A stretch of DNA of 64,000 nucleotides, from positions 1,922,001-1,986,000 of the forward strand of contig OZ251222.1 of NCBI GenBank assembly GCA_965240325.2. Direction: 5' to 3'. Origin of the DNA: Rebecca billardiae RCC1528. Its lineage: Eukaryota > Protista > Haptophyta. The translations under genes and the position numbers were made by a program. The notes beneath the pieces are model-generated. The model saw only the letters and a list, made by a program, of their open reading frames with translations, had not been told where the DNA came from and searched no databases. Positions 10,768 through 64,000 of this stretch are shown piece by piece; the first letter of the stretch is position 1, and each line of letters starts with the position of its first letter.

Positions 10768-11668
10768 CGCTTGGCGCGCGCGCGGCGCGGCGCGCTGCGG
10801 CCGTCGAGTTGCCGTGCGAAGGCGGCGCGTTGCGTGCGTGGCATCGGAACGCTACCGTGTTCCGCACTGCGCCCCGCAGCTCGCTCCTCGTCGACTTCGC
10901 CGCGCCTACGATCAGCGCGCATGCGAGCGTCGCCTCGGAATGAGCAGCCCGCGCCGGCCTCAGCCGTGAGCGCCCGCCTGGCGCGCGATGCGATCAACTC
11001 GGGGCACGAGCTGCGGCTGGGCGAGGAAGCATGTGCCTGCGCGCAAGCCTCGCCGCCTTGAGACACCGATCGTGCGCGTTGATGCAGCTTCAGACGGCTG
11101 TCGACGAATGCCGATCAGCCTGCACGAGCCTTGCATGCAGTGGAGATTAAACAACAGACCGCGAGCGCCCTGAAGTGATGAATAGGAGTCTTCGGGTTGC
11201 GTGTGCGCGCAGCGGCTTGTGTACATCTGTATGCATCGCCTGCGCGCGTGGCTGCTGTCATGCCATGCTTGAGTAGTTGCTCTGATGAGGAGTCCTTTCA
11301 AGGGCACCGCGACATTCGCAAGGGCAAGTAGAATAGTTGCGTGCAAGGTGCATGCCCTGCTCACGATCGGTGTCTCAAGGCGGCGAGGCTTGTGCGCAGG
11401 CACATGCTTCCTCGTCCAGCCGCAGCTCGTGCTCCGAGTTGATCGCATCGCGCGCCAGGCGGGCGCTCACGGCTGAGGCCGGCGCGGGCTGCTCATTCCG
11501 AGGCGACGCTCGCATGCGCGCTGATCGTAGGCGCGGCGAAGTCGACGAGGAGCGAGCTGCGGGGCGCAGTGCGGAACACGGTAGCGTTCCGATGCCACGC
11601 ACGCAACGCGCCACCTTCGCACGGCAACTCGACGGCCGCAGCGCGCCGCGCCGCGCGCGCGCCAAGCG
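10768..11668. repeat. Long inverted repeat: 307-bp arms (10768-11074 / 11362-11668) with a 287-bp loop
   Basis: The arms are reverse complements with 4 substitutions seen by eye. Confidence 0.95.
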
Positions 11669-11838
11669 ATGGTGCGCCGCAGTCCGGGTTGGCGGCCGCC
11701 ACTGGCGCAGCGCCAGTCCGGGAGCCATGCCCCCCCAGGGGGGGGCATGCCGTTCGGGAGCGTGTGGCAGGATCCCGGGAACGCCCTTGCTTGCAGAGCA
11801 GAGGCACGCGTACCGCCCATCATGCTCGCTCAGCAGCC

Positions 11839-18458: not shown

Positions 18459-19278
18459 GCGGCAGCGCTCAGCGGCCGATCGTCACACACGGGCCATGCA
18501 GCGATCATGACCGCCTGGCTAACTATGGCCCGCTAACTATGGCCCGGTGGCATCGCCACCACTTGTCGGTTGTCCGCTCCGCAGGACGAGCCACGAGGCC
18601 GACGCGCCGGTTTCCCTGACTCATGTCAGGTCCTGAGGCTTCTCCCCACTGTTCTGTGCCCGCGAGGCGGCGGCTGCCGGGCTAACCTGGTTCGCGGCAG
18701 ACTCACCGAGGCGGCTCGCTCGGACGCGCCATCTCGCGCGCGGTAACGCGGCGCAGGCAGAATGAGGCGGGTGCGCAGCCACGTCCCGGCGACACAGTAC
18801 CGTTTGCTTGGCTCACTACGGAGTACGGTGAAGCCTTCGATTTCTCACTTTTCTGAGGACCGGCTAAATCATCACCGTGCCACTACCGGAGCCCGGACCG
18901 CGGGGCGCGGCCGGACGTGTCGGGTCAGTCCGCGCTGAGGGCACTGCCACCGTTGCCAATGTGCGTCTTCTGATCGGCATCGGCAATGATACGTAGTACT
19001 TACCTAGGACTGGTGCAGCAAGCGCTCTGGCGGCTGTGGCCGCCCGGCGTCAAGCAGCCAGCCTCAGGCACAGGAGGGGGGTACAGTTTACTAAGAATAA
19101 GAGACGCACACAGCTCAGGCAGGCGAGATTACCCGCGTGGATCGGTGCACGGTCCTTTGGTCCGGGCGCCCCCCCGGATTCTTTAATCTCGCACCGGAGT
19201 GCGCATCTGCCGCCGCCGCCCCGGCGATTAGCGCGAGCCATTATCGTGGTCGTCGCTCGCGCTAATCGACGCAGCGTC

Positions 19279-44548: not shown

Positions 44549-44623
44549 CGATGTGCGTCGCAAGGCACTCCCTTGGACAGGCTCCGCAGTTGACGACCTC
44601 TTTCACCTCGGCACGTGCCTGTT

Positions 44624-44947
44624 GTAGCTCTCTGATCAAGAACTAGTGCCTTGCGTGCCGGGTAGCTCTCTGATCAGTAGGTTACGACGCGGTGGATTCA
44701 TTCTCCTGATGGCTCATTGATGAATACCATTTGTCGTCACGAAGCGGTGGATTCGTTCTCCTGATGGCTCCTTGATGAATGTAGCTCTCTGATCAAGAAC
44801 TAGTGCCTTGCGTGCCGGGTAGCTCTCTGATCAGTAGGTTACGACGCGGTGGATTCATTCTCCTGATGGCTCATTGATGAATACCATTTGTCGTCACGAA
44901 GCGGTGGATTCGTTCTCCTGATGGCTCCTTGATGAATACCATTTGTC
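44624..44947. repeat. 157-bp x2 tandem duplication with nested sub-repeats
   Basis: 44624-44780 matches 44781-44937. Internal gtagctctctgatca x4 and gcggtggattcRttctcctgatggctcMttgatgaat x4. Confidence 0.92.
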
Positions 44948-49410: not shown

Positions 49411-50027
49411 GAATCCTAAACGTCGCACGTGCTCGTTGGACAGACCGTGTCAATGGGACCGCGTGATCGCGCGCGGCGCCCGGAGCACAGACTCGAGCAC
49501 GATTGTCAGCCTGAGCAGTGCCCGCATACAGACAGGCACTATAGCACCGGAAGGTGAGACTATTAAGGCCAGAGGGGCAGGCGGCAGGGCTCTCCCGCTC
49601 GGCAATCTCTCTCGAAGCCGTCTCACCCGCGAGTCGGGGCCCGACGGCCGCGGGCGCGGAGCGGGAGCGGCGGCCGGCCGGCCGCCGGAGCGGAATTGCC
49701 GGACAGTAGTCTTAGAGTAGTCTGATGACGCAGACGATACTCATGATTCTATCTGATGATTTATAACGACACAGGTAGGACGACGCGGGTCTACTGATTC
49801 GTCGGCGGCAGTGCCCGATCGTCGACACGAAGTCGGCGTTGGTGGCAGAGCATAGCCTGCACCGCGATCGTATTAAATTATCGGCCTGATTGAGCTGCTG
49901 AAGCGCGATCCAACCCGCGGGCGGCCGGCCTATTTTTGGTGTTTTTCGCCGACGACAAAAATAAGCCTCGATATTTTGTCTCGCCGCGCCGCCGCAAGTC
50001 CGCCGATCGCCGCGCTGGTGACCACCA

Positions 50028-50366
50028 ATGCAGCCCCAGCAGCAGCCACAATCGGGCGGCGGTGGTGGGGCAGGCGGCTTCTTGGGCAACATCGGCAGAA
50101 AGCTGTCGACTGGTGCCGATGTTGCGCAGCGCACCGTCAAGGCACAGGCGCTCAAGGCCGAGATCCTGATGAAGGAGGGCACGGTCAAAGGCGTGAAGCA
50201 GGAGATGGGCATCAACATCTATGCGCCCCTGGAGACTGGAGACCAGGCAGAGGTGGCGCGAATCTTCAACGAGTTCAAGGTGAAGGTGGACGCGATCAAC
50301 GCCGAAATCGCCGCCAAGAGGATGGAGATCGCCGAGCTGGAAAAGGCCGGCGCGACACCAGCGTGA
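50028..50366 (+). CDS. Small coiled-coil hypothetical protein
   Basis: ATG-TGA ORF with coding-like codon use and an amphipathic helical sequence, downstream of an AT-rich promoter-like gap. Confidence 0.65.
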   Translation: MQPQQQPQSGGGGGAGGFLGNIGRKLSTGADVAQRTVKAQALKAEILMKEGTVKGVKQEMGINIYAPLETGDQAEVARIFNEFKVKVDAINAEIAAKRMEIAELEKAGATPA

Positions 50367-51149
50367 TCGCCGTTGTACTTGCAGTGCATGGTCCTGTCTC
50401 GAGGCACCACGAGGGCACATCTTGGCTGCCCGAGCGGTGCGGTGGCCTGGAGGTGGCCCCAGACTCTCCGCATATCGACCGCCAGGCTCTTGCGTATCAG
50501 CTCTTGCGTCTCGACTGTCAAACATCATCGCTGTCGAGACGCGGCCGCTGCGACCGAGTGTCAGCCGGAGTGATGACGAGTACGCTTTGGCCCTCCGGTC
50601 AGCGGCCATCTCACCTTTGCGACTCTCGAGTACGCGGTCAGGGTCCGACGGCAGTAGTGTCACTCAACAGCAGTGGCGACTGGGCAGACCGCAGTGCAGG
50701 CGGCGATGCCGCTCTCGAAGACTCGAACCATGTCCGCCGTTTAGGCCGTACAGTGGCGCCGTTAGACTCCGAGACAATGCCCGTGATCGACTGAGTGAGA
50801 CTGCCCCGGTGCGCGGCGGCCCACGGTGACCGGAAGAGTCCGGGGGTGAGCCACGGTGGCCCGTGCCCGCCGTGGTCGCCGGCGCCGTGGCGGCAGGCGC
50901 CGCACTGCGCCGCAGGCGGGTCAAATTATTACGACGACGGTAGACTGGCATCGGTACAGTAGTTAGGCATCAATGACAATGTAGCTAGCTAGTCATACGC
51001 CATACGGCATCATGCGCTTTGACGGCTTTGAGTTTGAGTCCGCGCGCGTCACTGCTCGGACTGACGGGCGAGGCTCGGTCCACGTTGTTCACTACTATAG
51101 CTGTGCCTGTATTACACTGAGCGTCTAAACTGTAGTATATATAGTTATA

Positions 51150-51170
51150 CTATATATATATATATATATA
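51150..51170. repeat. Short (TA)n microsatellite
   Basis: tatatatata run between convergent genes. Confidence 0.85.
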
Positions 51171-51428
51171 CGCCGTGGCACTGGACGGACCTGAGACTTG
51201 AGAGTGAGTGAGACTGCTGATGACTGACTGGACACCGTTGGTTGATAATGCTAATAGTATTAATTTATAAGTTGTTTTTTCTGAAAAACAGCAGACCAGC
51301 AGTGGGCGCCGCCGCGCCGGTCCTCGGATTGCCGTGGGCGCCGCACTGATGACCAATCGATGGCAGGCAAAATAATGGGCCATGGGCGCAATGCCGCTCG
51401 AGTGTCATCAGCCGCTGTCGTCGCGTAG

Positions 51429-53768
51429 TCAGACTGCGAGTCCTGGTAGAGGGGGGGCACCGGGGGGCCCACGGCCCGGCCGCGGCCGCGGCTGACCATC
51501 CGAAGACGAATCGTACTGACGGCGAGCGCTCGTGTAGCCTGTGGGACTCCTGGCAGTCGCATCGGTGAGAAGCTGCTCGACCGCGCGCGGCAGATCGCCC
51601 GCTGCGTCGAGAAGCGCACGGACGGCGTCCGCCTCGGCAAAGCCCATGCCCACCAGGGATGCCAAGTCCACGCTGTCGACGTGCCCATCTCCATCGTCGT
51701 GGCGGCGGCCGCCGCGCACCTCGGCGGTCGGCGACATGGCCAGATTGACGTGCGCCGGCGACGCCGGCTGGCTGCTGGCCGCGAAGAAGCGGTGGATGCC
51801 CCCGCTCTCGCGCCGGGCGGGCTGTGCTGAGCGCGCACGCTGCTCGGCAGCGCACGCGTGCTTCCGCACCGGCTGCTTCCCCGCCGCGCCGGCCGCCCTC
51901 AGCTCCGCGCGCACCTCGGCAGCAACCACGTCCGGCAGCTCGGCGAGCACGGCTGGGTCCACCTCCGCCTCCGCAAGCCGCACGTACTTGGCCGCGCGCG
52001 TGGGCGTGCTCGGGAGGGAGGCGTCGGCGGTGCGGCGCGCGCTCGGCCCGTCGCGCGCCGGGCTGCCCGCGCGCGCGCTTCTGCGCTCGTCCTCCGCGCC
52101 GCCGTCCTCCCCGTCCTCCTCCTCCGCCATCCCCTCCGCGTCCGCGGTGTCGCCCGTGTCGCGCCGCAGGAAGTGAGCTATGGACAGCTGCCTGTCGTCG
52201 TGCGCGCAGCGACCGTCCGCGTCGGCGTCGGCGCGCTCGAGCTTGGTGGCGCGCACGCCCATCAGCCTGAGCCGCAGTGGCCGTGCCTCTGCCCGCGCGC
52301 GCTCGAGCTCGCGCTCGAGCAGCGCACCGGCGCGCGCATACAGCTCGTCGGCCGTGCGCGCCGGCTCGCCGGTCGAGTCGCGCGTGTGCACATCAAACTC
52401 ATCGGTCTTGAGCTTGATCGTGACGGTGCGCGCGCGGGCGCCGACGCCATCGGTGCCGGAGCAGGCGGCGAGGTCGTCGGCGAGCTTCGTCGTGAGCCAC
52501 CTGAGGGTCGAGCCGAGCGCGGCGGCGTCCGCCGTCGCGCGGAACGTGCGCTCGACGGACATGCCCTTCTGCGCAGGCACGCCACGCGCGGCCGTCGCGG
52601 CCTCTGCGGGCGCGTCGTCGCGGCCGTCCGCCCAGCCGAGCGACGCGCGCAGGAGGAAGTCTGCGCTGACCGGGCTGAAGACGGCGGCGATGTCGACGGC
52701 GGCCTGCCGGAGCTCGCCGCACGTGCGCACGCCGAGCGCGCCGCCGAGCACCTTCTCCTGCACGCGGCCGATCCCGCCGATCTTGCGCACCGGCAGCGGC
52801 GACAGGAAGTTGAGAATCTCCTCGCGCGACGGCTGGCAGCCATACTGCCCGTTGGGCTTGCGCTGGTCGGCGCACACCTTGGCGAGGAGGAAGTTGGGCG
52901 CGAGCCCGGCCGAGACGGTCAGGCCGCCGGTGGCGTCGCACACGCGCGCGCGGATCTCCTGGACTACCGACTCCGCCAGCGCAAAGCGCCGCGCGATACA
53001 GGCGGCGTCCGCGGGCTCGCCGCCGCTCTCCCCATCACCCTCGCCCTCGCCCTCGCCGCCGCGCTCGCCGCCCGCACCGTCCGCGATGACGTCATCGCGA
53101 GCGAGCGCGTGGCTGCCGAGCCGCTCGCGCCGGGCCACGTACCGCGTGAGGTCCAGGTACGCCTCGTCCAGGGAGTAGGAGCGCATCTGCGCGTCGTACT
53201 CGCGGAAGATGGCGCGCGCGACGGCCGCGACCGCCGTGTACTTTCCAAAGTCAGGCCGCACGAAGACGAGCTCGGCGGCGGGCATGCCGAACTCGGGGCC
53301 GCGCCTGCACAGCTCCTGGCCGACAAAGCCGGGCATCGCCGAGCGCACGCCCCACCGCCTCGCCACGTAGTTCGCCGTGGAGATCATGCCGATGCCGCCG
53401 ACTGCCACCGGCTTGCTAGCGAGCTCTGGACGGTCGCGGATCTCGACTGCCGCGTAGAACATGTCAAAGTCGATCACGGCGCACGCGCGGTCGAGGCGCC
53501 GCGTGTGCTCGAGCTCGGCCACCCGCTCATCCACCCGCCGCCGCAGCGCGTTCACCGAGGCGCGGTCCAGCTCGGCGCGCGTGCGGCAGAGCGCCTTGAT
53601 GCGCCCCTCCACCTTCGCATCCTGCTTGAGCTGGCGGCGCGTGTACGCGCTCTCGCCGCTCGTTGCGAGAATGATGCGATTGATCGCCTCCTTGTCGATG
53701 CCCGCCATGCCACCCTTCTCGTTCGCGAAGACGTAGATGGACTTGGCTCGCTCCTCCGCCGACGACAT
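51429..53768 (-). CDS. POLK: DNA polymerase kappa (Y-family, DinB)
   Basis: N-clasp KGGMAGIDKEAINRII, DFDMFYAAVE, STANYVARRWGVRSAMP, SLDEAYLD, KPNGQ, PVRKIGGIG, KGMSVERTF, RTVTIKLK, LRLMGVR. Confidence 0.95.
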   Translation of the reverse strand: MSSAEERAKSIYVFANEKGGMAGIDKEAINRIILATSGESAYTRRQLKQDAKVEGRIKALCRTRAELDRASVNALRRRVDERVAELEHTRRLDRACAVIDFDMFYAAVEIRDRPELASKPVAVGGIGMISTANYVARRWGVRSAMPGFVGQELCRRGPEFGMPAAELVFVRPDFGKYTAVAAVARAIFREYDAQMRSYSLDEAYLDLTRYVARRERLGSHALARDDVIADGAGGERGGEGEGEGDGESGGEPADAACIARRFALAESVVQEIRARVCDATGGLTVSAGLAPNFLLAKVCADQRKPNGQYGCQPSREEILNFLSPLPVRKIGGIGRVQEKVLGGALGVRTCGELRQAAVDIAAVFSPVSADFLLRASLGWADGRDDAPAEAATAARGVPAQKGMSVERTFRATADAAALGSTLRWLTTKLADDLAACSGTDGVGARARTVTIKLKTDEFDVHTRDSTGEPARTADELYARAGALLERELERARAEARPLRLRLMGVRATKLERADADADGRCAHDDRQLSIAHFLRRDTGDTADAEGMAEEEDGEDGGAEDERRSARAGSPARDGPSARRTADASLPSTPTRAAKYVRLAEAEVDPAVLAELPDVVAAEVRAELRAAGAAGKQPVRKHACAAEQRARSAQPARRESGGIHRFFAASSQPASPAHVNLAMSPTAEVRGGRRHDDGDGHVDSVDLASLVGMGFAEADAVRALLDAAGDLPRAVEQLLTDATARSPTGYTSARRQYDSSSDGQPRPRPGRGPPGAPPLPGLAV

Positions 53769-53979
53769 GATCGCGGGGGGGTGGGGAACGCGCGACCGTT
53801 CACCTCCGCGTGAGCTAGCCGAAATGAAAACTCAAAACCACGACGGCCAATGCTGACTGCAAATAAAAAGAGCAGGCTCGCCGGTCCTGCACTCTCAACT
53901 CCTGCGTCGAGACGAGCAGAGCACGCTCGCATTCGCGCCCGCCCGCGGCCCCGCGCGGGTCCAGGACGACTACCGCGTC

Positions 53980-55053
53980 ATGCCGCCGCGTGCCACCGCC
54001 GCGCTCATCTACGCCATCGCGGGCGTGTGCGCATGCAGTGCGGCCCAGCTGCTGCCTGCATGCCGCTCTGTCTCCTCGGCGCGCGCCCCCACTCGTGGCT
54101 CGCGCGTACAAAATGTGCATGCCTCGGACCGTGGGCCATCCGAGGCGGACGACATGCGCGCTCAGCTCACGCGCGTGCGCGAGGAGACCATCGGGGCGGC
54201 CAGGCAGAGCCTAGTCCAGGCAGCAATGGGTCGCCTGGAGGGCCTTCTCCTCTCGAAGGAGCGGCAGCTCGACGACCAGGCCTCCGAGCTGGCCCGCACC
54301 AAGACCGAGGTTGTCGCTCTGCAGACGCGTGCCGAGGCTGCTGAGGCGCGCACGGCGAGCGTCCAGGCTGAAGCAGATGCGCAGATCTCGCAGCTGCGGA
54401 GTCGTGAGCAGGAGCTGGCGCGTGAGCTCGAAACCGAGCGTCGCACGGCTGACGAGCGCAGCCGCGCCCTCACGGCACTCGAGGCGCGCTCGGACGAGCA
54501 ACTGCGCAAGGCGGAGGCACGCGCGGCCGAGCTCGAGGCTGAGCTGGAGCGCGTGCGCATCTCGGAGCAGGACGCCCTGGGCCGGCTGAACGTGGTCGAC
54601 TTTGCGCGCAAGCGGCTCGAGAGCGAGCTCGCGCAGGCGACCTCCGGCCTGGACGAGATGCGCAAGCGGGTCCAGGCGCTGCTGGGCGCGAAGACGGACG
54701 CAGAGGACGCGCTCGAGCACGCGCAGGACGAGGCGAGCCGCGAGGCGAAGCGCGCCAGGTCGGCTGAGGACGCGGCCAAGCGCGCGGAGCGTGCGGGGTC
54801 GGACGCAAAGGAGGCCGTCAAGACGCTGCGCGTGCAGCTGCGGGAACGAGAGGCTGCGGCGGAGGCCATGGAGACCGAGCTGAACCTGACGCGCGTGGAC
54901 CTGGCGCGCGCCGAGTCGGAGCGCTGGCCAGCTGAGTGGATCGCTCGGCGCGCCGAGACGAACGCCGAAATCGCTGAGAATCGAGGCCGTGCCGGACGCG
55001 CTCTGCGGCGGGTGCGGAAGGTCGTCCTGTCGCCGTTCCGGCGCTCGAGCTGA
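53980..55053 (+). CDS. Coiled-coil protein with N-terminal signal peptide
   Basis: Hydrophobic ALIYAIAGVCA followed by long E/R/A/L heptads. Confidence 0.7.
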   Translation: MPPRATAALIYAIAGVCACSAAQLLPACRSVSSARAPTRGSRVQNVHASDRGPSEADDMRAQLTRVREETIGAARQSLVQAAMGRLEGLLLSKERQLDDQASELARTKTEVVALQTRAEAAEARTASVQAEADAQISQLRSREQELARELETERRTADERSRALTALEARSDEQLRKAEARAAELEAELERVRISEQDALGRLNVVDFARKRLESELAQATSGLDEMRKRVQALLGAKTDAEDALEHAQDEASREAKRARSAEDAAKRAERAGSDAKEAVKTLRVQLREREAAAEAMETELNLTRVDLARAESERWPAEWIARRAETNAEIAENRGRAGRALRRVRKVVLSPFRRSS

Positions 55054-55492
55054 CTGGCGCAGAGTGACTGAGCTCACTGAGCAGCCTGCTGCTGTGCACC
55101 CGAAAAAGTCACAGTCAACGGCGCCGTCATCGTCGGCGCGCGCAGCGTGCGAACCGTGCGAGTGCGAAGTGCGAGTGCGGAGGCAGCGCCAGCGGTCAGC
55201 GGAGTGAGACTGGACGACTAGAAATTCTATTATCCGCTGCTACTATTAAGCCGATTATAAGGTCGCGCGCGCGCGCGGCCGGGTGCCGGGTGGCATCTGG
55301 CGGGTTGCCAGCCTCGGATATCCCAGGACAATGTCAGGCTGCGATATCCGGCGCCATGGTCATGTGATATGCCCACCTCGCCCACGGCTCGGGCGCCTGG
55401 CAGCTCGATAGCCAATGCCATCCGCGTACTGTAGATCACGGCACGCAGCTCTGACGAAGTTGGGACCGCGGGCCCGAGACCACCCTTGCTGC

Positions 55493-56161
55493 TCACATCA
55501 TCGGGCGCGGAGGTGGGCCGCCGCGCTTTTTCTGCTGATCCTTCATCTCCTTGATCCGCTTGAGCTTGGTCAGCTTCTTCAGGTGCGCTTGCCGCTCCTC
55601 CTCGCGGCTGATCAGGCTGTACAGGTTACCCACCTGGCTCTCACGGTCGCGCGCGACCTCCACGCCAGCGGCTTCGAAGAGTGCGCGCGCACGCTGCACC
55701 TCCTCTCTCGCGCGGCCATACTCCTTGGCGTTGAACAGACGCAGTGCCTCCTGAAGGACATCGTCGCCTTCCAGCCGAGCATAGACGGTTGCTGCGCCCG
55801 GGGAATTTGCAGCCGCCGTGCGAGCGGCGGCGGTGGCGGCGACGGCGGCAGCGCTCCGTGCAGCGTCGATGCGGGAGGCGATCTCGTCGAGAAGTGCGAC
55901 CTGTGAGTCCGTCGGACCGCCACTAACTGCGTACGCTCTCCTTGCTGCCTGCAACGACGACTCCGCCTCGTCGAGATCGCCAGCTCGCAGCTTGCTGACC
56001 GCCTCGAGTGCCCTGCGGTCGGCAGGACTGGGCTCGCTCGATGCCGTGACGCAGGCCCGGGCGCGTGTCGGCGTGAGCATGCCACCTGATGGCCGCACGC
56101 GCGGGACTGAGTGCGCCAGTGACACGCCCAACAAACTCGCGGCCAGCACGACGCGCATCAT
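55493..56161 (-). CDS. Alpha-helical (TPR-like) protein with probable bipartite plastid targeting
   Basis: MMRVVLAASLLGVSLA signal peptide plus Ser/Arg-rich transit-like segment. Two helical repeats (LRAGDLDEAESSLQAARRAY; FNAKEYGRAREEVQRARALF). Confidence 0.65.
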   Translation of the reverse strand: MMRVVLAASLLGVSLAHSVPRVRPSGGMLTPTRARACVTASSEPSPADRRALEAVSKLRAGDLDEAESSLQAARRAYAVSGGPTDSQVALLDEIASRIDAARSAAAVAATAAARTAAANSPGAATVYARLEGDDVLQEALRLFNAKEYGRAREEVQRARALFEAAGVEVARDRESQVGNLYSLISREEERQAHLKKLTKLKRIKEMKDQQKKRGGPPPRPMM

Positions 56162-56371
56162 TCTCGCCACGAGTGAGCGGCGGCGGCGGTAGCAGGGCTG
56201 ACGGACGACCCCGATGCACGCCACGCACAGCCGCACAGGAACCAGCGCGAGCTGCACAGCAGGAAGCCCAGCTCGCGCCGGCAGTGGTTGGATGACCGCT
56301 GCGCACCCTGAACCCGCACGGCCTTCAACCTTGGCTGCAGCGCGATCACCCCCCCGCGCCGAGACGGCACG

Positions 56372-58028
56372 ATGCGGGTCGCGACGTGGAATGTGGCTGC
56401 CATCAACAACAACCCGTTCGAGTACTGGGCTTCGCATCCCGACCCCGAGTACACGCGCGTCATGCAAGCCGTCGAGCGCTTCGTCGTTGAGCCGGGCGCC
56501 GATGACATACCGGTCAATCACGTCTTCACCGACGCCATGTTTGATGCGCTCAAGGCGCGCATGGCTTCCGAGGGATGGGCGGGCCTGGACGTGACAGAAG
56601 CGCGCTGGCGAGCAGATCTGCGCGAGCGCACCGTTGTCAGCGGCTTCCTCACCGACGGCACGCTCGGCAAGAAGCGGCTCGCGTCGATGCCCGATCGGTT
56701 CACCAACACGATCGTGTGCGCGGACGGCAAGTCGGTGCCGCGCCCGTCTGTGATCAACAGCTTCACCGAAGAGCTGCGCGACATGGCGGCGTGGTGGTCG
56801 CGCTGGCTGTCCTTCATGTTCGACGAGCCGCTGCCGATCCCCACCAAGGACGGCTCCGCCGCCAGCAAGCGGCCGGTTGAGCTGCTCGTGCCGATCAAGC
56901 GGGCCAAGTACCCGGATGTGACCGAGGAGGAGGAGGCGGCGTCCCTCCCGCTGCAGACGGTGTGCCTGGCGATCTTCGACGCGGTGCTGCTGCACCTGAT
57001 GAGCACCGTCGCGCCGACCACCTGGCAGCCGCTCAAGAAGGAGCTCGTCGACGCGCTCGTCACGCGCAAGCAGGAGCGCACTCTCGAGATCATCCGCTCG
57101 CACTTCCACAGCACCGACGTGCTGTGCGTGCAGGAGGCGTCGACGGAGCTCGCGCGCGCCATCGAGGAGCAGGTCGCGCCGGGGCGCTTCGTGGTCGTCC
57201 CGTCGAGCGCCGACCCCACGCGCGGGCAGAACTCGCTGCTCGTGCTCTCCGCGGCCACGTTTGACAAGTCGAGCGTCGCCGAGCTGACGCAGCCTGTGCT
57301 GGACAAGCTGGCCGCAGCCGGCCACGCGGGCGCTCTGGCGGCGGGCGACCTGCTGGCGGTGACCGTGTGCGCCGAGGGCCAGCCGAGCGAGCAGTTCCTG
57401 CTGGCGTCCTTCCACGGCGACACGAATGGGCTGCAGACCGCGCCGGTCGTCACAGCGCTGCACGCGCAGTGCGCCGCGGCCAGCGCGGAGGGCGGGCGCT
57501 TGCGGCTGATCGCTGGCATCGATGCCAACACGTACCTGGACCCCGACGGCACGGTGGCGAAGGCGGGCAAGTTCTACTCGGTGGTCAAGTTCACGCAGGA
57601 CCTGCGCGAGCTCGGGCTGCGCACGTGCTGGTCCCCGAGCGTGCCGTGGAGCGACTGCATCACCACGTACAACGCTCGCACGCACCTGCAGCCGCAGCTG
57701 AACAAGGCGTGCCGATTCCGTGAGATCTCGCTCAAGGGCGACATCAACCCCAAAGTGCGCGGCGCGCGGCCGCCGCGCGAGCGGCGCGTGCCTCGCGGCG
57801 CCACCGGGCGCATCGCTCGCGCGCGCCGCGCCTGAAGCGCCCGTGCCGCGGGTGCCGCGCCCGCAGGATCACATCATCTTTGCGGCGCACGACTTCTCGC
57901 CTTCCAACGTGTCCCGCGACAACACTGGCGAAGGCATCTACGTGGCGGCAGCGGTGCTGCCCGCCATCCGCTTCCCATCGGATCACTGCTGCGTCTCGGC
58001 CCGTCTAGACACACCGGGCAGCAGCTGA
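56372..58028 (+). CDS. Endonuclease/exonuclease/phosphatase (EEP) fold protein; exons 56372-57754, 57867-58028
   Basis: MRVATWNV, DVLCVQE, SFHG, GIDAN, spliced NPK|DHIIF, FPSDH. Intron 57755-57866 is GTGCGC...CGCAG. Confidence 0.85.
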
Positions 58029-58437
58029 ACACGCCGGATTCTCCTCTTTGGCAAGGCCATCCCCATCGTCACCAAACATTGTCGCGCGGTGCGCCCCCCG
58101 AGTTTTGCCAGAATCAGGGGTGTCCAGGAAGCCTCCCCCACCACGCTCTAGGGGCACCTAGAGCGGGGGCACCTTAGATTCCTGGCTGAGCGGTCTTTTA
58201 CCCATCTGTAGGGACACTTCCGGAAGGTACCTGGAGCGGTGGTTGTGACCTATGCGCAATGATGCGTGCCGACTCGTATAGATATCCATACGCAACGACA
58301 GCGATCCGTCCAGTACGACGAGAGTGGATCTGATACTGCCAGAAGACAGGAGTAGACAGGCGCCGCGTGGCTGCGGCGCAGCCGCCGCGCGCCGGTCGTG
58401 CGGCGGCCAGTGGCGCGGCCGGGAGGAGCCCCCCCCC

Positions 58438-61400
58438 GTGTCAGTGATACAGGCAGATACAGTGATACAGTGATACACGGGTGGCCTGTAGTCCGGGTGC
58501 CGGCAGTCCGGGCGCGGACGGCGGCGCGCGCGGCGGCGGCTTGGCAAGGAGGGCCCCCCGTATCAGTGATACAGGCAGATACAGTGATACAGTGATACAC
58601 GGGCCTGGCCTGTAGTCCGGATGGCGGCAGTCCGGAAGCGGACGGCGGCGCGCGCGACGCGGCAGCTGGCAAGGAGGCCCCCCGTATCAGTGATACAGGC
58701 AGATACAGTGATACAGTGATACACGGGCCTGGCCTGTAGTCCGGATGGCGGCAGTCCGGAAGCGGACGGCGGCGCGCGCGGCGCGGCAGCTGGCAAGGAG
58801 GCCCCCCGTATCAGTGATACAGGCAGATACAGTGATACAGTGATACACGGGCCTGGCCTGTAGTCCGGATGGCGGCAGTCCGGGAGCGGACGGCGGCGCG
58901 CGCGGTGGCGGCTTGGCAAGGAGGCCCCCCGTATCAGTGATACAGGCAGATACAGTGATACAGTGATACACGGGCCTGGCCTGTAGTCCCGGTCCGGATG
59001 GCGGCAGTCCGGGAGCGGACGGCGGCGCGCGCGGAGGCGGCTTGGCAAGGAGGCCCCCCGTATCAGTGATACAGGCAGATACAGTGATACAGTGATACAC
59101 GGGCCTGGCCTGTAGTCCGGATGGCGGCAGTCCGGGAGCGGACGGCGGCGCGCGCGGAGGCGGCTTGGCAAGGAGGCCCCCCGTATCAGTGATACAGGCA
59201 GATACAGTGATACAGTGATACACGGGCCTGGCCTGTACGGTCCGGATGGCGACAGTCCGGGAGCGGACGGCGGCGCGCGCGGCGGCGGCTTGGCAAGGAG
59301 GCCCCCCCGTATCAGTGATACAGGCAGATACGGTGATACAGTGATACACGGGCCTGGCCTGTACTCTGTAGTCCGGATGGCGACAGTCCGGGAGCGGACG
59401 GCGGCGCGCGCGGCGGCGGCTTGGCAAGGAGGGCCCCCCGTATCAGTGATACAGGCAGATACAGTGATACAGTGATACAGGAGGCCTGCTTTAGTCCGGA
59501 TGGCGGTAGTCCGGGAGCGGACGGCGGCGCGCGCGGCGCGGCAGCTGGCAAGGAGGCCCCCCGTATCAGTGATACAGGCAGATACAGTGATACAGTGATA
59601 CAGGAGGCCTGCTTTAGTCCGGATGGCGGTAGTCCGGGAGCGGACGGCGGCGCGCGCGGTGGCGGCTTGGCAAGGAGGCCCCCCGTATCAGTGATACAGG
59701 CAGATACAGTGATACAGTGATACACGGGCCTGGCCTGTAGTCCGGATGGCGGCAGTCCGGGAGCGGACGGCGGCGCGCGCGGCGCGGCAGCTGGCAAGGA
59801 GGCCCCCCGTATCAGTGATACAGGCAGATACAGTGATACAGTGATACACGGGCCTGGCCTGTAGTCCGGATGGCGGCAGTCCGGGAGCGGACGGCGGCGC
59901 GCGCGGAGGCGGCTTGGCAAGGAGGCCCCCCGTATCAGTGATACAGGCAGATACAGTGATACAGTGATACACGGGCCTGGCCTGTAGTCCGGATGGCGGC
60001 AGTCCGGGAGCGGACGGCGGCGCGCGCGGCGCGGCAGCTGGCAAGGAGGGCCCCCCGTATCAGTGATACAGGCAGATACAGTGATACAGTGATACACGGG
60101 CCTGGCCTGTAGTCCGGATGGCGGCAGTCCGGGAGCGGACGGCGGCGCGCGCGGAGGCGGCTTGGCAAGGAGGCCCCCCGTATCAGTGATACAGGCAGAT
60201 ACAGTGATACAGTGATACACGGGCCTGGCCTGTAGTCCGGATGGCGGCAGTCCGGGAGCGGACGGCGGCGCGCGCGGCGCGGCAGCTGGCAAGGAGGCCC
60301 CCCGTATCAGTGATACAGGCAGATACAGTGATACAGTGATACACGGGCCTGGCCTGTAGTCCGGATGGCGACAGTCCGGGAGCGGACGTCGGCGCGCGCG
60401 GTGGCGGCTTGGCAAGGAGGCCCCCCGTATCAGTGATACAGGCAGATACAGTGATACAGTGATACACGGGCCTGGCCTGTAGTCCGGATGGCGGCAGTCC
60501 GGGAGCGGACGGCGGCGCGCGCGGAGGCGGCTTGGCAAGGAGGCCCCCCGTATCAGTGATACAGGCAGATACAGTGATACAGTGATACACGGGCCTGGCC
60601 TGTAGTCCGGATGGCGACAGTCCGGGAGCGGACGTCGGCGCGCGCGGCGGCGGCTTGGCAAGGAGGCCCCCCCGTATCAGTGATACAGGCAGATACAGTG
60701 ATACAGTGATACACGGGCCTGGCCTGTAGTCCGGATGGCGGCAGTCCGGGAGCGGACGGCGGCGCGCGCGGAGGCGGCTTGGCAAGGAGGCCCCCCGTAT
60801 CAGTGATACAGGCAGATACAGTGATACAGTGATACACGGGCCTGGCCTGTAGTCCGGATGGCGACAGTCCGGGAGCGGACGGCGGCGCGCGCGGCGGCGG
60901 CTTGGCAAGGAGGCCCCCCCGTATCAGTGATACAGGCAGATACAGTGATACAGTGATACACGGGCCTGGCCTGTAGTCCGGATGGCGACAGTCCGGGAGC
61001 GGAAGGCGGCGCGCGCGGCGGCGGCTTGGCAAGGAGGCCCCCCCGTATCAGTGATACAGGCAGATACAGTGATACAGTGATACAGGAGGCCTGCTTTAGT
61101 CCGGATGGCGGTAGTCCGGGAGCGGACGGCGGCGCGCGCGGTGGCGGCTTGGCAAGGAGGCCCCCCGTATCAGTGATACAGGCAGATACAGTGATACAGT
61201 GATACACGGGCCTGGCCTGTAGTCCGGATGGCAGCAGTCCGGGAGCGGACGGCGGCGCGCGCGGCGCGGCAGCTGGCAAGGAGGCCCCCCGTATCAGTGA
61301 TACAGGCAGATACAGTGATACAGTGATACACGGGCCTGGCCTGTAGTCCGGATGGCGACAGTCCGGGAGCGGACGTCGGCGCGCGCGGTGGCGGCTTGGC

Positions 61401-62073
61401 AAGGAGGCCCCCCGTATCAGTGATACAGGCAGATACAGTGATACAGTGATACACGGGCCTGGCCTGTAGTCCGGATGGCGGCAGTCCGGGAGCGGACGGC
61501 GGCGCGCGCGGAGGCGGCTTGGCAAGGAGGCCCCCCGTATCAGTGATACAGGCAGATACAGTGATACAGTGATACACGGGCCTGGCCTGTAGTCCGGATG
61601 GCGACAGTCCGGGAGCGGACGGCGGCGCGCGCGGCGGCGGCTTGGCAAGGAGGCCCCCCCCGTATCAGTGATACAGGCAGATACAGTGATACAGTGATAC
61701 ACGGGCCTGGCCTGTAGTCCGGATGGCGACAGTCCGGGAGCGGACGGCGGCGCGCGCGGCGGCGGCTTGGCAAGGAGGCCCCCCCGTATCAGTGATACAG
61801 GCAGATACAGTGATACAGTGATACACGGGCCTGGCCTGTAGTCCGGATGGCGACAGTCCGGGAGCGGACGGCGGCGCGCGCGGCGGCGGCTTGGCAAGGA
61901 GGCCCCCCCGTATCAGTGATACAGGCAGATACAGTGATACAGTGATACACGGGCCTGGCCTGTAGTCCGGATGGCGGCAGTCCGGGAGCGGACGGCGGCG
62001 CGCGCGGAGGCGGCTTGGCAAGGAGGGCCCTTCGTATCAGTGATACAGGCAGATACAGTGATACAGTGATACA
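58438..62073 (+). repeat. Tandem array of ~123-124-bp units (30 cores): 40-nt core GTATCAGTGATACAGGCAGATACAGTGATACAGTGATACA plus GC-rich spacer
   Basis: Cores counted at ~58438, 58560, 58684 ... 61910, 62034. Confidence 0.97.
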
Positions 62074-62866
62074 GCAGGTGGCCTGGTAGTCCGGGTGGTG
62101 GCAGTCTGCCGTCTGGAGTCTGGGCGTGTGCCGGCGAGTGCCGGCGGCAGCAGAGTTGAGCAGTCCGGGCGCGGACAGGGACGATTGCGGCGGCCTGAAC
62201 AGGGAGTTCCCGGCCCCGACGGTGGTGAAGTTGGCTCGCCTGCGTGCCGCGGATGATCAGTCAACGGTGAGCAAGACGGGGGGGGGCGGGGCGGGGGGCG
62301 ACACGGCACGAGGCCCTGACGGCCGAGCTGGCTGGCGAGCCGTTGTGCGCCGCAGCATACGCAGCGCCGCACGCGCGCTGCCGGCGAGGGCACGGGCGGT
62401 GATCAGACACGGCGGCGGCCAGCAGGCACGGTGCCGGCTCTCGCCTGCGCGCTCGGCCCGCAGGGCGCGTGCCAGTCAGTCATTGGCGCGGCAGCCGGCG
62501 GCGGCTGCGACGTGCCGTCAGCGGCCGCCGCGGGCGTGCGTGGCGACAACTGCAGCGATGCCTGGCTGTCGCGGTGCGGCTCGCAGAACAGCGCACGGGC
62601 GCCACGTCTCCATCACGCCACGGCTCCAGCGCGCCCTGACGCGGCCCGGCACTCACGCCCACACGAGCTGCGAAGACGCGCGCCTTGCCATCGCGCGAGA
62701 GTGGGGGTCGTCGGGCCCGGCCGCGAATCGCCGGCGGCCGTTTTGAAACCCGCTGCCGCTGTATCACTGTATCACTGTACCATCGGCGACGGCTTCATGG
62801 GCGGTGACAGTTGGCGGGCGTCAATCTCGCCTGCCTGAGCTGTGTGCGTCTCTTATTCTTAGTAAA

Positions 62867-63255
62867 CTGTATCTGCCTGTATCACTGATACGGGGGGGCT
62901 CCTCCCGGCCGCGCCGCCGCGCCGCGCCGCCGTCCACCCGGACTGCCGCCACCCGGACTACAGGCCACCTGTATCACTGTATCACTGTATCTGCCTGTAT
63001 CACTGATACGGGGGGGCTCCTCCGGCCTCCCGGCCCGCGCCGCCGCGCCGCGCCGCCGTCCACCCGGACTGCCGCCACCCGGACTACAGGCCACCTGTAT
63101 CACTGTATCACTGTATCTGCCTGTATCACTGATACGGGGGGGCTCCTCCGCCGGCCGCGCCGCCGCGCCGCGCCGCCGTCCACCCGGACTGCCGCCACCC
63201 GGACTACAGGCCACCTGTATCACTGTATCACTGTATCTGCCTGTATCACTGATAC
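62867..63255 (-). repeat. Inverted block of the same repeat family (variant spacer), 3 full cores plus 1 partial
   Basis: Reverse-complement cores at 62970-63009, 63096-63135 and 63216-63255, and a partial core at 62867-62891. Confidence 0.95.
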
Positions 63256-63283
63256 GGCAGGGGCTCTGCCGAGGAGCCCCCCT

Positions 63284-63750
63284 GTATCAGTGATACAGGC
63301 AAATACAGTGATACAGTGATACAGGTGGCCTGTAGTCCGGGTGGCGGCAGTCCGGGTGGACGGCGGCGCGGCGCGGCGGCGCGGCCGGGAGGAGCCCGGC
63401 CCCCGTATCAGTGATACAGGCAGATACAGTGATACAGTGATACAGGTTGAGGTGGCCTGTAGTCCGGGTGGCGGCAGTCCGGGTGGACGGCGGCGCGGGC
63501 CGCGGCGCGGCGGCGCGGCCGGGAGGAGCCCCCCCGTATCAGTGATACAGGCAAATACAGTGATACAGTGATACGGGTGGCCTGTAGTCCGGGTGGCGGC
63601 AGTCCGGGCGGGCGGCTGCCGGCGCGTGCTGCGCGGCGGCGTGGCCGGGACGGGAGCCCCCCGTATCAGTGATACAGGCGAATACAGTGATACAGTGATA
63701 CAGGTGGCCTGTAGTCCGGATTAGGCGGTAGTCCGGGCGGCGGGCGGCGC
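63284..63750 (+). repeat. Forward block of the same repeat family (variant spacer), 4 cores
   Basis: Cores at 63284, 63405, 63536 and 63663. Confidence 0.95.
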
Positions 63751-63809
63751 GCTGACGTATGGACACGGTGCCGCGGCGGCTGGGGCTGTGCAGCCTGTCG
63801 GCTCAGGGC

Positions 63810-63910
63810 CCTGTATCAGCCGGCATTGATACACAGCTGGGGCTGTATCAGGTGGCATTGATACACAGCCGGGCTGTATCAGCTGGTGTTGGTGCCCACT
63901 GATACAGCCC
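63810..63910. repeat. ~30-bp mini-repeats reusing the CTGTATCA / TGATAC motif
   Basis: ctgtatcag..ggcattgatacacagc x2, then gggctgtatcag...ctgatacagccc. Confidence 0.8.
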
Positions 63911-64000
63911 AAGATGAGTATTGTCTAAGGGGGATCAGACGTGTGCCGCCGGCCAACCAGCGCTCGCGGACGGCTGCGCTTCTCGGAAACTACAGATTCT

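Follow-up and report, generated by a model that had tools for sequence, protein, structure and literature searches.

The 64,000-nt window analysed here (Rebecca billardiae RCC1528, contig OZ251222.1, positions 1,922,001 to 1,986,000) ends in a block of tandem repeats that is very probably the interior of one transposon-like insertion. The element is ~5.9 kb long and runs from 58088 to ~64022, just past the end of the window; the repeat arrays fill its interior, and it is carried by one allele only. The evidence gives good support to imperfect terminal inverted repeats (TIRs) of ~45 nt that start with GG, to a right end at 64022, and to an 8-bp duplication of the target. Inside the element, a 40-nt core with GATAC boxes alternates with a GC-rich spacer. 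The element is tentatively read as a non-autonomous cut-and-paste transposon whose GATAC boxes serve as accessory transposase sites. The original prediction had described a 5.5-kb repeat complex at 58438-63910 and had proposed it as an undescribed stand-alone system. The repeat is real, but the feature is larger than described, with four of its cores inverted, and a stand-alone system is not supported: the arrays are the interior of an insertion, with a predicted 8-bp duplication, that extends from 58088 past the window end.

The left boundary was identified by comparison with public contigs. Contigs L106 and L107 (runs ERR14847148 and ERR14847151) match window 51239-58087 at 99.93-99.99%. After 58087, both depart from the window sequence and continue with an identical string of 22 other letters, which has no occurrence anywhere in the window. 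The two contigs probably derive from the same strain as the assembly, and they are therefore regarded as a second allele that lacks the block rather than as a second species. The public contigs were built from a 31-mer graph (PMC12424806). When such a graph was simulated with k=31, the path of the empty site ran 30 minus t letters past the breakpoint, with t being the length of the duplicated target. The run-on of 22 letters thus indicates that t is 8. In the simulation, a 30-nt run-on resulted from a zero-length duplication and also when the other allele carried a multi-copy insertion of unrelated sequence, whereas 22 was observed.

The predicted left copy of the 8-bp target-site duplication (TSD), TGTCGCGC, is found at 58080..58087 on the + strand, ~50 nt past the stop codon of a host EEP/DUF8234-family gene. 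The left TIR follows at 58088..58132 (+, ~45 nt) and was placed by the breakpoint against the other allele and by its match to the right end. It starts with GGTGCG, and the GG start is supported by the finding that, with a start one base earlier, the contig would be predicted to end at a position other than the observed 64052. A left non-coding segment (58133..58396, no strand assigned) with a small hairpin at 58141-58168 lies between this TIR and the arrays. At the right, the inner half of the TIR is visible at 63978..64000 on the - strand, with the terminus predicted at 64022, beyond the window. Over the final 23 bases of the window, 17 of 23 positions agree with the reverse complement of 58110-58132. 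Of 301 registers compared, this one scores highest (15/21, with 10 for the runner-up), and the terminal match decays after ~45 nt. A comparable terminal match arises on its own in ~3% of background trials; at the fixed register, none of 58,000 background 21-mers reaches 15. In run X1, one contig spans 63792-64000 and extends 52 nt beyond 64000, to the predicted terminus plus 30. Since the filled path is expected to rejoin the empty one at the terminus plus 30, this overhang provides an independent fix of the right-end register. The breakpoint arithmetic, the register of the terminal repeats and the X1 overhang agree to the base. A Helitron-like hairpin with CTAA near 63925 was also considered as the element end and was dropped because the flank of the other allele does not follow there.

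The surroundings of the insertion are ordinary host DNA. The window is gene-dense, with 59-81% GC, and the EEP/DUF8234-family gene at 56372-58028, which has one GC-rich intron (57755-57866), ends 60 nt before the insertion. The insertion may alter the 3' end of this gene on the filled allele. The gene was rejected as a gene of the element itself, as it belongs to a widespread algal family: with the first exon as the query, its near relatives are 54-59% identical, the Diacronema lutheri cluster 58%, and other algae near 45%. By these identities, the host is probably a haptophyte of Pavlovales-like affinity, different from D. lutheri. No synteny with D. lutheri was found by which the right flank could be reached. 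These surroundings bear on whether the block might be an immobile element of the host chromosome, either a centromere-type box, as had been among the candidates first proposed, or a lattice for chromatin proteins. The phased and conserved boxes would suit such a role. This explanation is, however, considered very unlikely, since the second allele lacks the block, the ends of the block are of the transposon type, and the DNA around it is dense in ordinary genes, with a host gene immediately before the insertion.

The arrays themselves largely follow the predicted pattern. An exact scan allowing up to 2 mismatches found 37 intact 40-nt cores, and one further core is cut in two by an insert, in agreement with the ~38 near-invariant copies that had been reported. 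The interrupted palindrome GTATCA-G-TGATAC occurs 38 times, against 0.01 expected by chance. The GATAC boxes stand at core positions 9, 19, 27, and 35, which reproduces the 10/8/8 spacing, and the described difference in base composition was likewise recovered, with 40% GC and no CpG in the core and 80% GC in the spacer. Along the window, 30 cores lie on the + strand, then four on the - strand (62760-63255), then four on the + strand again (63284-63702). The first group forms array A (58397..62075, +), whose 30 cores at 58438-62073 recur with a unit of ~123 nt and mosaic spacer variants; its left edge, made of the first unit and the preceding partial spacer, resembles spacer subfamily B. A non-coding middle segment of ~680 nt (62076..62757, no strand assigned), with decayed spacer at its start, separates array A from array M (62758..63262, -), and these two arrays face inward. 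Array M holds four inverted subfamily B cores, the innermost of which is split (62760-62779 and 62872-62891), and array B (63271..63751, +) holds four subfamily B cores. As the strand switches from - to + between the last two groups of cores, 62866-63751 forms a quasi-palindrome. Its hinge lies at 63256..63283, between arrays M and B, and its arms are 93-97% alike beside the hinge and 87-89% alike farther out.

Three mini-repeats, which had been noted at 63810-63910, were seen at 63811..63910 (no strand assigned). Each is an inverted TGTATCA/TGATACA pair, with gaps of 8, 8, and 18 nt, and they occur in run X1 as well. The box that had been taken to recur alone at 62759-62780 is instead one half of the split - strand core. 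The insert that splits it (62780..62871, +) consists of an 86-nt end of another multi-copy element together with a duplicated ACTGTA, which is present on both sides of the 86-nt piece. The last 49 nt of the 86-nt piece recur at window 19082-19130, and run X1 contains many contigs of this other element with different flanks and at high depth. At 62780-62871 and 19082-19130, this high-copy element end finishes in CTTAGTAA plus ACTGTA and looks 5'-truncated. An assembly artefact was judged unlikely as the source of the arrays, because the 35 units include 25 distinct ones, the inverted arms become less alike away from the hinge, and both types of unit as well as the right end are found in X1; yet the hinge is spanned by no contig.

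The core is far better preserved than the spacer. Subfamily A and subfamily B/M differ from each other at 0.9% of core sites and at 22.6% of spacer sites, which bears out the two predicted spacer subfamilies around a fixed core. Within array A, the difference is 0.18% in the core and 6.4% in the spacer; when each distinct change is counted once, there is 1 event in the core versus 25 in the spacer (p 0.0006). The contrast persists when the base classes are separated over 35 aligned units: G/C columns show 1 event in 16 core columns against 40 in 67 spacer columns (p 0.002), and A/T columns show 2 events in 23 core columns against 11 in 17 spacer columns (p 0.002). None of the 20 indels in the aligned units falls in the core (p 0.0005), though the core is built of slippage-prone octamers, and the number of octamers is constant across the 38 cores. 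The event and indel counts over the aligned units are possibly inflated where the end of the spacer is misaligned. Within B/M alone, the contrast between core and spacer is not significant. The divergence is uneven along the spacer: its first 35 nt are fairly conserved too, and the differences are found mostly in the last 45 nt. Spacer variants occur in mixed combinations along array A. Subfamily B may represent the older unit, with array A grown by unequal exchange, as would be expected from the mosaic spacers and the B-like left edge. Since the core is kept across base classes and without indels, the earlier proposal that something acts on the box stands, and the GATAC boxes are probably protein-binding sites.

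The same contrast could in principle arise without selection, if the array were a passenger minisatellite in a non-autonomous transposon. The palindrome and the octamers would then correct one another by local templated repair, and the GC-rich spacer would slip and mutate faster. The spacer, at 80% GC, is indeed rich in short runs and near-palindromes, and its changes often look like slippage; redundancy weakens selection on each box, and satellite monomers commonly hold conserved motifs and palindromes (PMC12628747). This explanation is nevertheless improbable, because the contrast persists in each base class and is not driven by CpG, because the octamer number is fixed in all 38 cores, and because the same heptamer pair appears in the differently built mini-repeats near the right end. 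Decay of CpG was rejected as the cause of the spacer divergence: with sequence context taken into account, CpG transitions make up 1 of 14 spacer substitutions in array A.

A fixed core that alternates with variable sequence also recalls a CRISPR-like array or a processed repeat RNA, both of which the original prediction had raised, and the M/B palindrome, if transcribed, would form a long hairpin. The spacers are, however, homologous and 77-100% alike, and no gene is present in the block and no cas domain among the open reading frames (ORFs) of the window. Rfam gave no family for the repeat and only sub-threshold matches to microRNA-like hairpins, at the hinge, and single units fold no better than shuffled sequences (z -1.1 and -1.6). 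An origin of this kind is hardly credible.

Block 58088-64000 encodes no gene. No frame with a positive codon score was found in the unique segments or the repeat unit, while two held-out genes do score positive. The middle segment scores negative in all six frames, and its longest ORF has no homolog, family, or credible look-alike. The middle segment was therefore not retained as a candidate primase or transposase remnant, as the homolog, family, and codon checks gave no signal. When pseudo-ORFs of the arrays were used as bait for other copies, only unrelated repeat proteins were retrieved. No transposon gene was present among the 54 ORFs or ORF pieces of the window that were scanned (25 of 27 families listed).

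In cut-and-paste transposons, terminal repeats together with a target duplication mark insertion by a DDE transposase. The terminal repeats and the predicted 8-bp duplication thus point to a DDE transposase that acts in trans. This enzyme, encoded elsewhere in the genome, would move the element, and staggered cutting would have inserted it into one chromosome copy, just behind the host gene. Less firmly, the GATAC boxes might bind the transposase of the family or a partner protein; with several subunits seated on one core, the boxes would be kept in fixed phase. Among the roles listed for the boxes in the original prediction, transposase sites are the best reading, as internal protein sites of a transposon. 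The unit of core and GC-rich spacer would have been duplicated within the element, local fold-back could have produced the inverted M/B arms, and unequal exchange could have expanded the left array to its 30 mosaic units. The accessory role of the boxes and the growth of units into a satellite have described parallels. In Muta1, the number of repeats raises transposase binding, and extra repeats strengthen binding and excision (PMC5499845). The repeats of Galileo hold secondary transposase sites (PMC3573991), and in Tetris, tandem units grow into a satellite inside gene-less copies (PMC4079207).

Several observations weigh against this transposon reading. The X1 overhang could also be a coverage break. 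Both the right end and the right duplication fall beyond the window and are placed by graph arithmetic. A transposase with these ends was not found in the searches, and consequently no superfamily is assigned; Merlin was not detected in three Haptista genomes (PMC8101967). The terminal repeats contain no box, the first boxes lie 350 nt in from the left end, and the arrangement of the boxes lacks the mirror symmetry about the ends that is seen in true foldback TIRs. With ~150 redundant boxes, selection on each box through transposition of the whole element would be weak, yet even in the young array A the core has hardly changed (the 1 event against 25 given above). This preservation fits selection on each unit, and it is the main argument for a different role of the boxes, as iterons of a replication origin.

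Under that alternative, the ends and the mode of insertion are the same, and the element would descend from a terminal-repeat element with a primase gene but have kept no gene itself. Units with an intact core would be copied preferentially by a primase or primase-helicase that acts in trans, and the lost primase gene would once have occupied the middle segment between arrays A and M. The arrays do face inward around this segment, and a core preserved inside a redundant array fits per-unit selection, as at an origin. TGATAC clusters also lie directly beside a primase/helicase gene in three unrelated prokaryotic loci (L112, L061, and L009/L018), which offers an analogy; these loci were picked by the box alone, and the clusters are of mixed orientation in two of them. 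Against this, the middle segment contains no primase remnant, the similarity of the prokaryotic loci to the element is limited to a word of 6-7 nt, with no homology in spacer or flank, and the three cases come from ~110 loci with no proper control. We consider this explanation possible but doubtful. The corresponding wider proposal, that there is an undescribed eukaryotic class that joins GG termini and an 8-bp duplication to a primase and an iteron origin, and that the primase was lost and the origin unit amplified here, may be entertained with similar reserve. No description of a replicating, primase-carrying transposon class was found in literature searches.

Other copies of the core exist: in run X1, a core is preceded by a third spacer type that is absent from the window. 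Outside this organism, no relative was found in metagenome, viral, prokaryotic, plasmid, or phage searches. The exact core patterns were unmatched in metagenome contigs, viral contigs, and prokaryotic genomes, the left terminus was not found in viral contigs, and BLAST against plasmids and phages gave no match. The octamer run alone matched 105 metagenome loci, none with homology in spacer or flank. In viral contigs, it gave 6 matches versus 1 for the control, which reduce to two lineages versus one. The mini-repeat pattern gave 24 viral matches, all single and scattered, and a literature search for the octamer returned only primer sequences.

Some of the loci that carry the box are of interest by themselves. 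L112 6090-8210 holds a primase-AAA_25-winged helix gene, L061 145-2950 a Prim-Pol-DUF3987-HTH gene, and L009 1970-3894 an AAA_25 gene beside DUF6371; in each, the adjoining TGATAC cluster is a candidate iteron origin. In a phage lineage (L011 3000-3330, also L006, L008, L022, L079, L080, L087, L103-L105, and L143-L146), a TGATAC/GTATCA cluster of mixed orientation lies just upstream of a small-terminase-like gene and is kept across 80-100% protein identity. It is possible that this cluster is an origin or a packaging site.

Further features were observed elsewhere in the window. A 307-nt inverted repeat with 98% identity surrounds a 280-nt loop at 10768-11668. To its right, at 11681 and 11715, stand two AGTCCGGG words that resemble words of the spacer, probably by chance. 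A 1.45-kb stretch at 49791-51238, at whose edges contigs L114 and L106/L107 stop, is probably a repeated or polymorphic element and has no clear terminal repeats. Long (AT)n and (AG)n tracts enclose a perfect 157-nt tandem duplication at 44623-44937.

Read as a non-autonomous transposon that bears a satellite, the element would be a new case of a kind already known, from a lineage with poorly described transposons. A satellite is growing here inside a recent insertion on one allele, with a box preserved ~25-35x better than the rest of the unit. The question of why satellite monomers keep conserved boxes thereby becomes testable with one oligonucleotide. If the ends and boxes were shared with primase-carrying elements, they would define the cis-acting sites of a replicating class of transposons. 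If the primase and iteron class is true, the array would be a natural read-out of the bases that a replication protein needs.

The element was finally compared with described systems. Sites of tyrosine recombinases have inverted binding arms around a crossover spacer of 6-8 nt. The palindrome of the core has a gap of 1 nt, an 8-nt gap is found in two of the three mini-repeats, and no recombinase gene is present. Iteron origins beside primase-helicase genes, of the P4 and SaPI type, are found in phages, satellites, and integrative elements. The present element resembles them in its short direct and inverted boxes within a relatively AT-rich core, and it has the TGATAC word in common with L112, L061, and L009. 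It differs in that no initiator or primase-helicase gene adjoins it, the neighbour being the host EEP/DUF8234 enzyme, and in that a eukaryotic chromosome carries its boxes in many copies, as a 123-nt satellite, with no homology beyond the word. Elements of the hAT superfamily have subterminal repeats, and their termini are usually CAG/TAG. Like them, the present element has a predicted 8-bp duplication (their TSD is 8 bp, PMC5499845) and, near one end, a short motif that bears no relation to the TIR and occurs in both orientations; unlike them, its terminus is GG and its motifs fill the whole interior. Carriers of Helentron-associated satellites have dispersed internal arrays, sometimes of differing orientation, in non-autonomous elements (PMC12628747). 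Helitrons and Helentrons, however, insert without duplicating their target and lack symmetrical TIRs, whereas the present element has TIRs and the predicted 8-bp duplication.

The foldback elements Tetris (PMC4079207), Galileo (PMC3573991), and Muta1 (PMC5499845) share with the present element gene-less copies and a non-coding middle segment. Tandem units are likewise expanded to a satellite within the element, and foldback duplications of 7-10 bp compare with the 8 bp predicted here, which would also fall within the 8-10 bp by which MULE/foldback elements are recognised. The repeats of foldback elements and MULEs, however, sit in long (>100 bp) mirror-image TIRs, while the ~45-nt TIR of the present element is free of boxes; and the outer arrays A and B are both on the + strand, unlike those of foldback elements.

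Merlin elements have GG termini, TIRs of 24-462 bp, duplications of 8-9 bp, and frequent internal repeats (PMC8101967). Sy.m_F1, a Merlin of Symbiodinium microadriaticum, has TIRs of 51 bp, a TSD of 8 bp, and nested repeats with a second, oppositely oriented copy. The present element agrees with Merlin in its 5'-GG left end, its imperfect ~45-nt TIRs, and its predicted 8-bp duplication, with the right end beyond the window. It agrees with Sy.m_F1 in internal tandem repeats that are made of short sub-repeats and duplicated in opposite orientation. It departs from Merlin in that this copy lacks a DDE_Tnp_IS1595 gene, with no coding frame in 58088-64000. It departs from Sy.m_F1 in that its arrays are far longer (38 units), and a strongly conserved core is not described for Sy.m_F1 in the part of the source available. 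As the copy has no defining transposase and the three Haptista genomes yielded no Merlin, the element is filed neither as Merlin nor as a foldback element. The closest described anatomy is that of Merlin, and the element resembles a non-autonomous Merlin or a foldback element.

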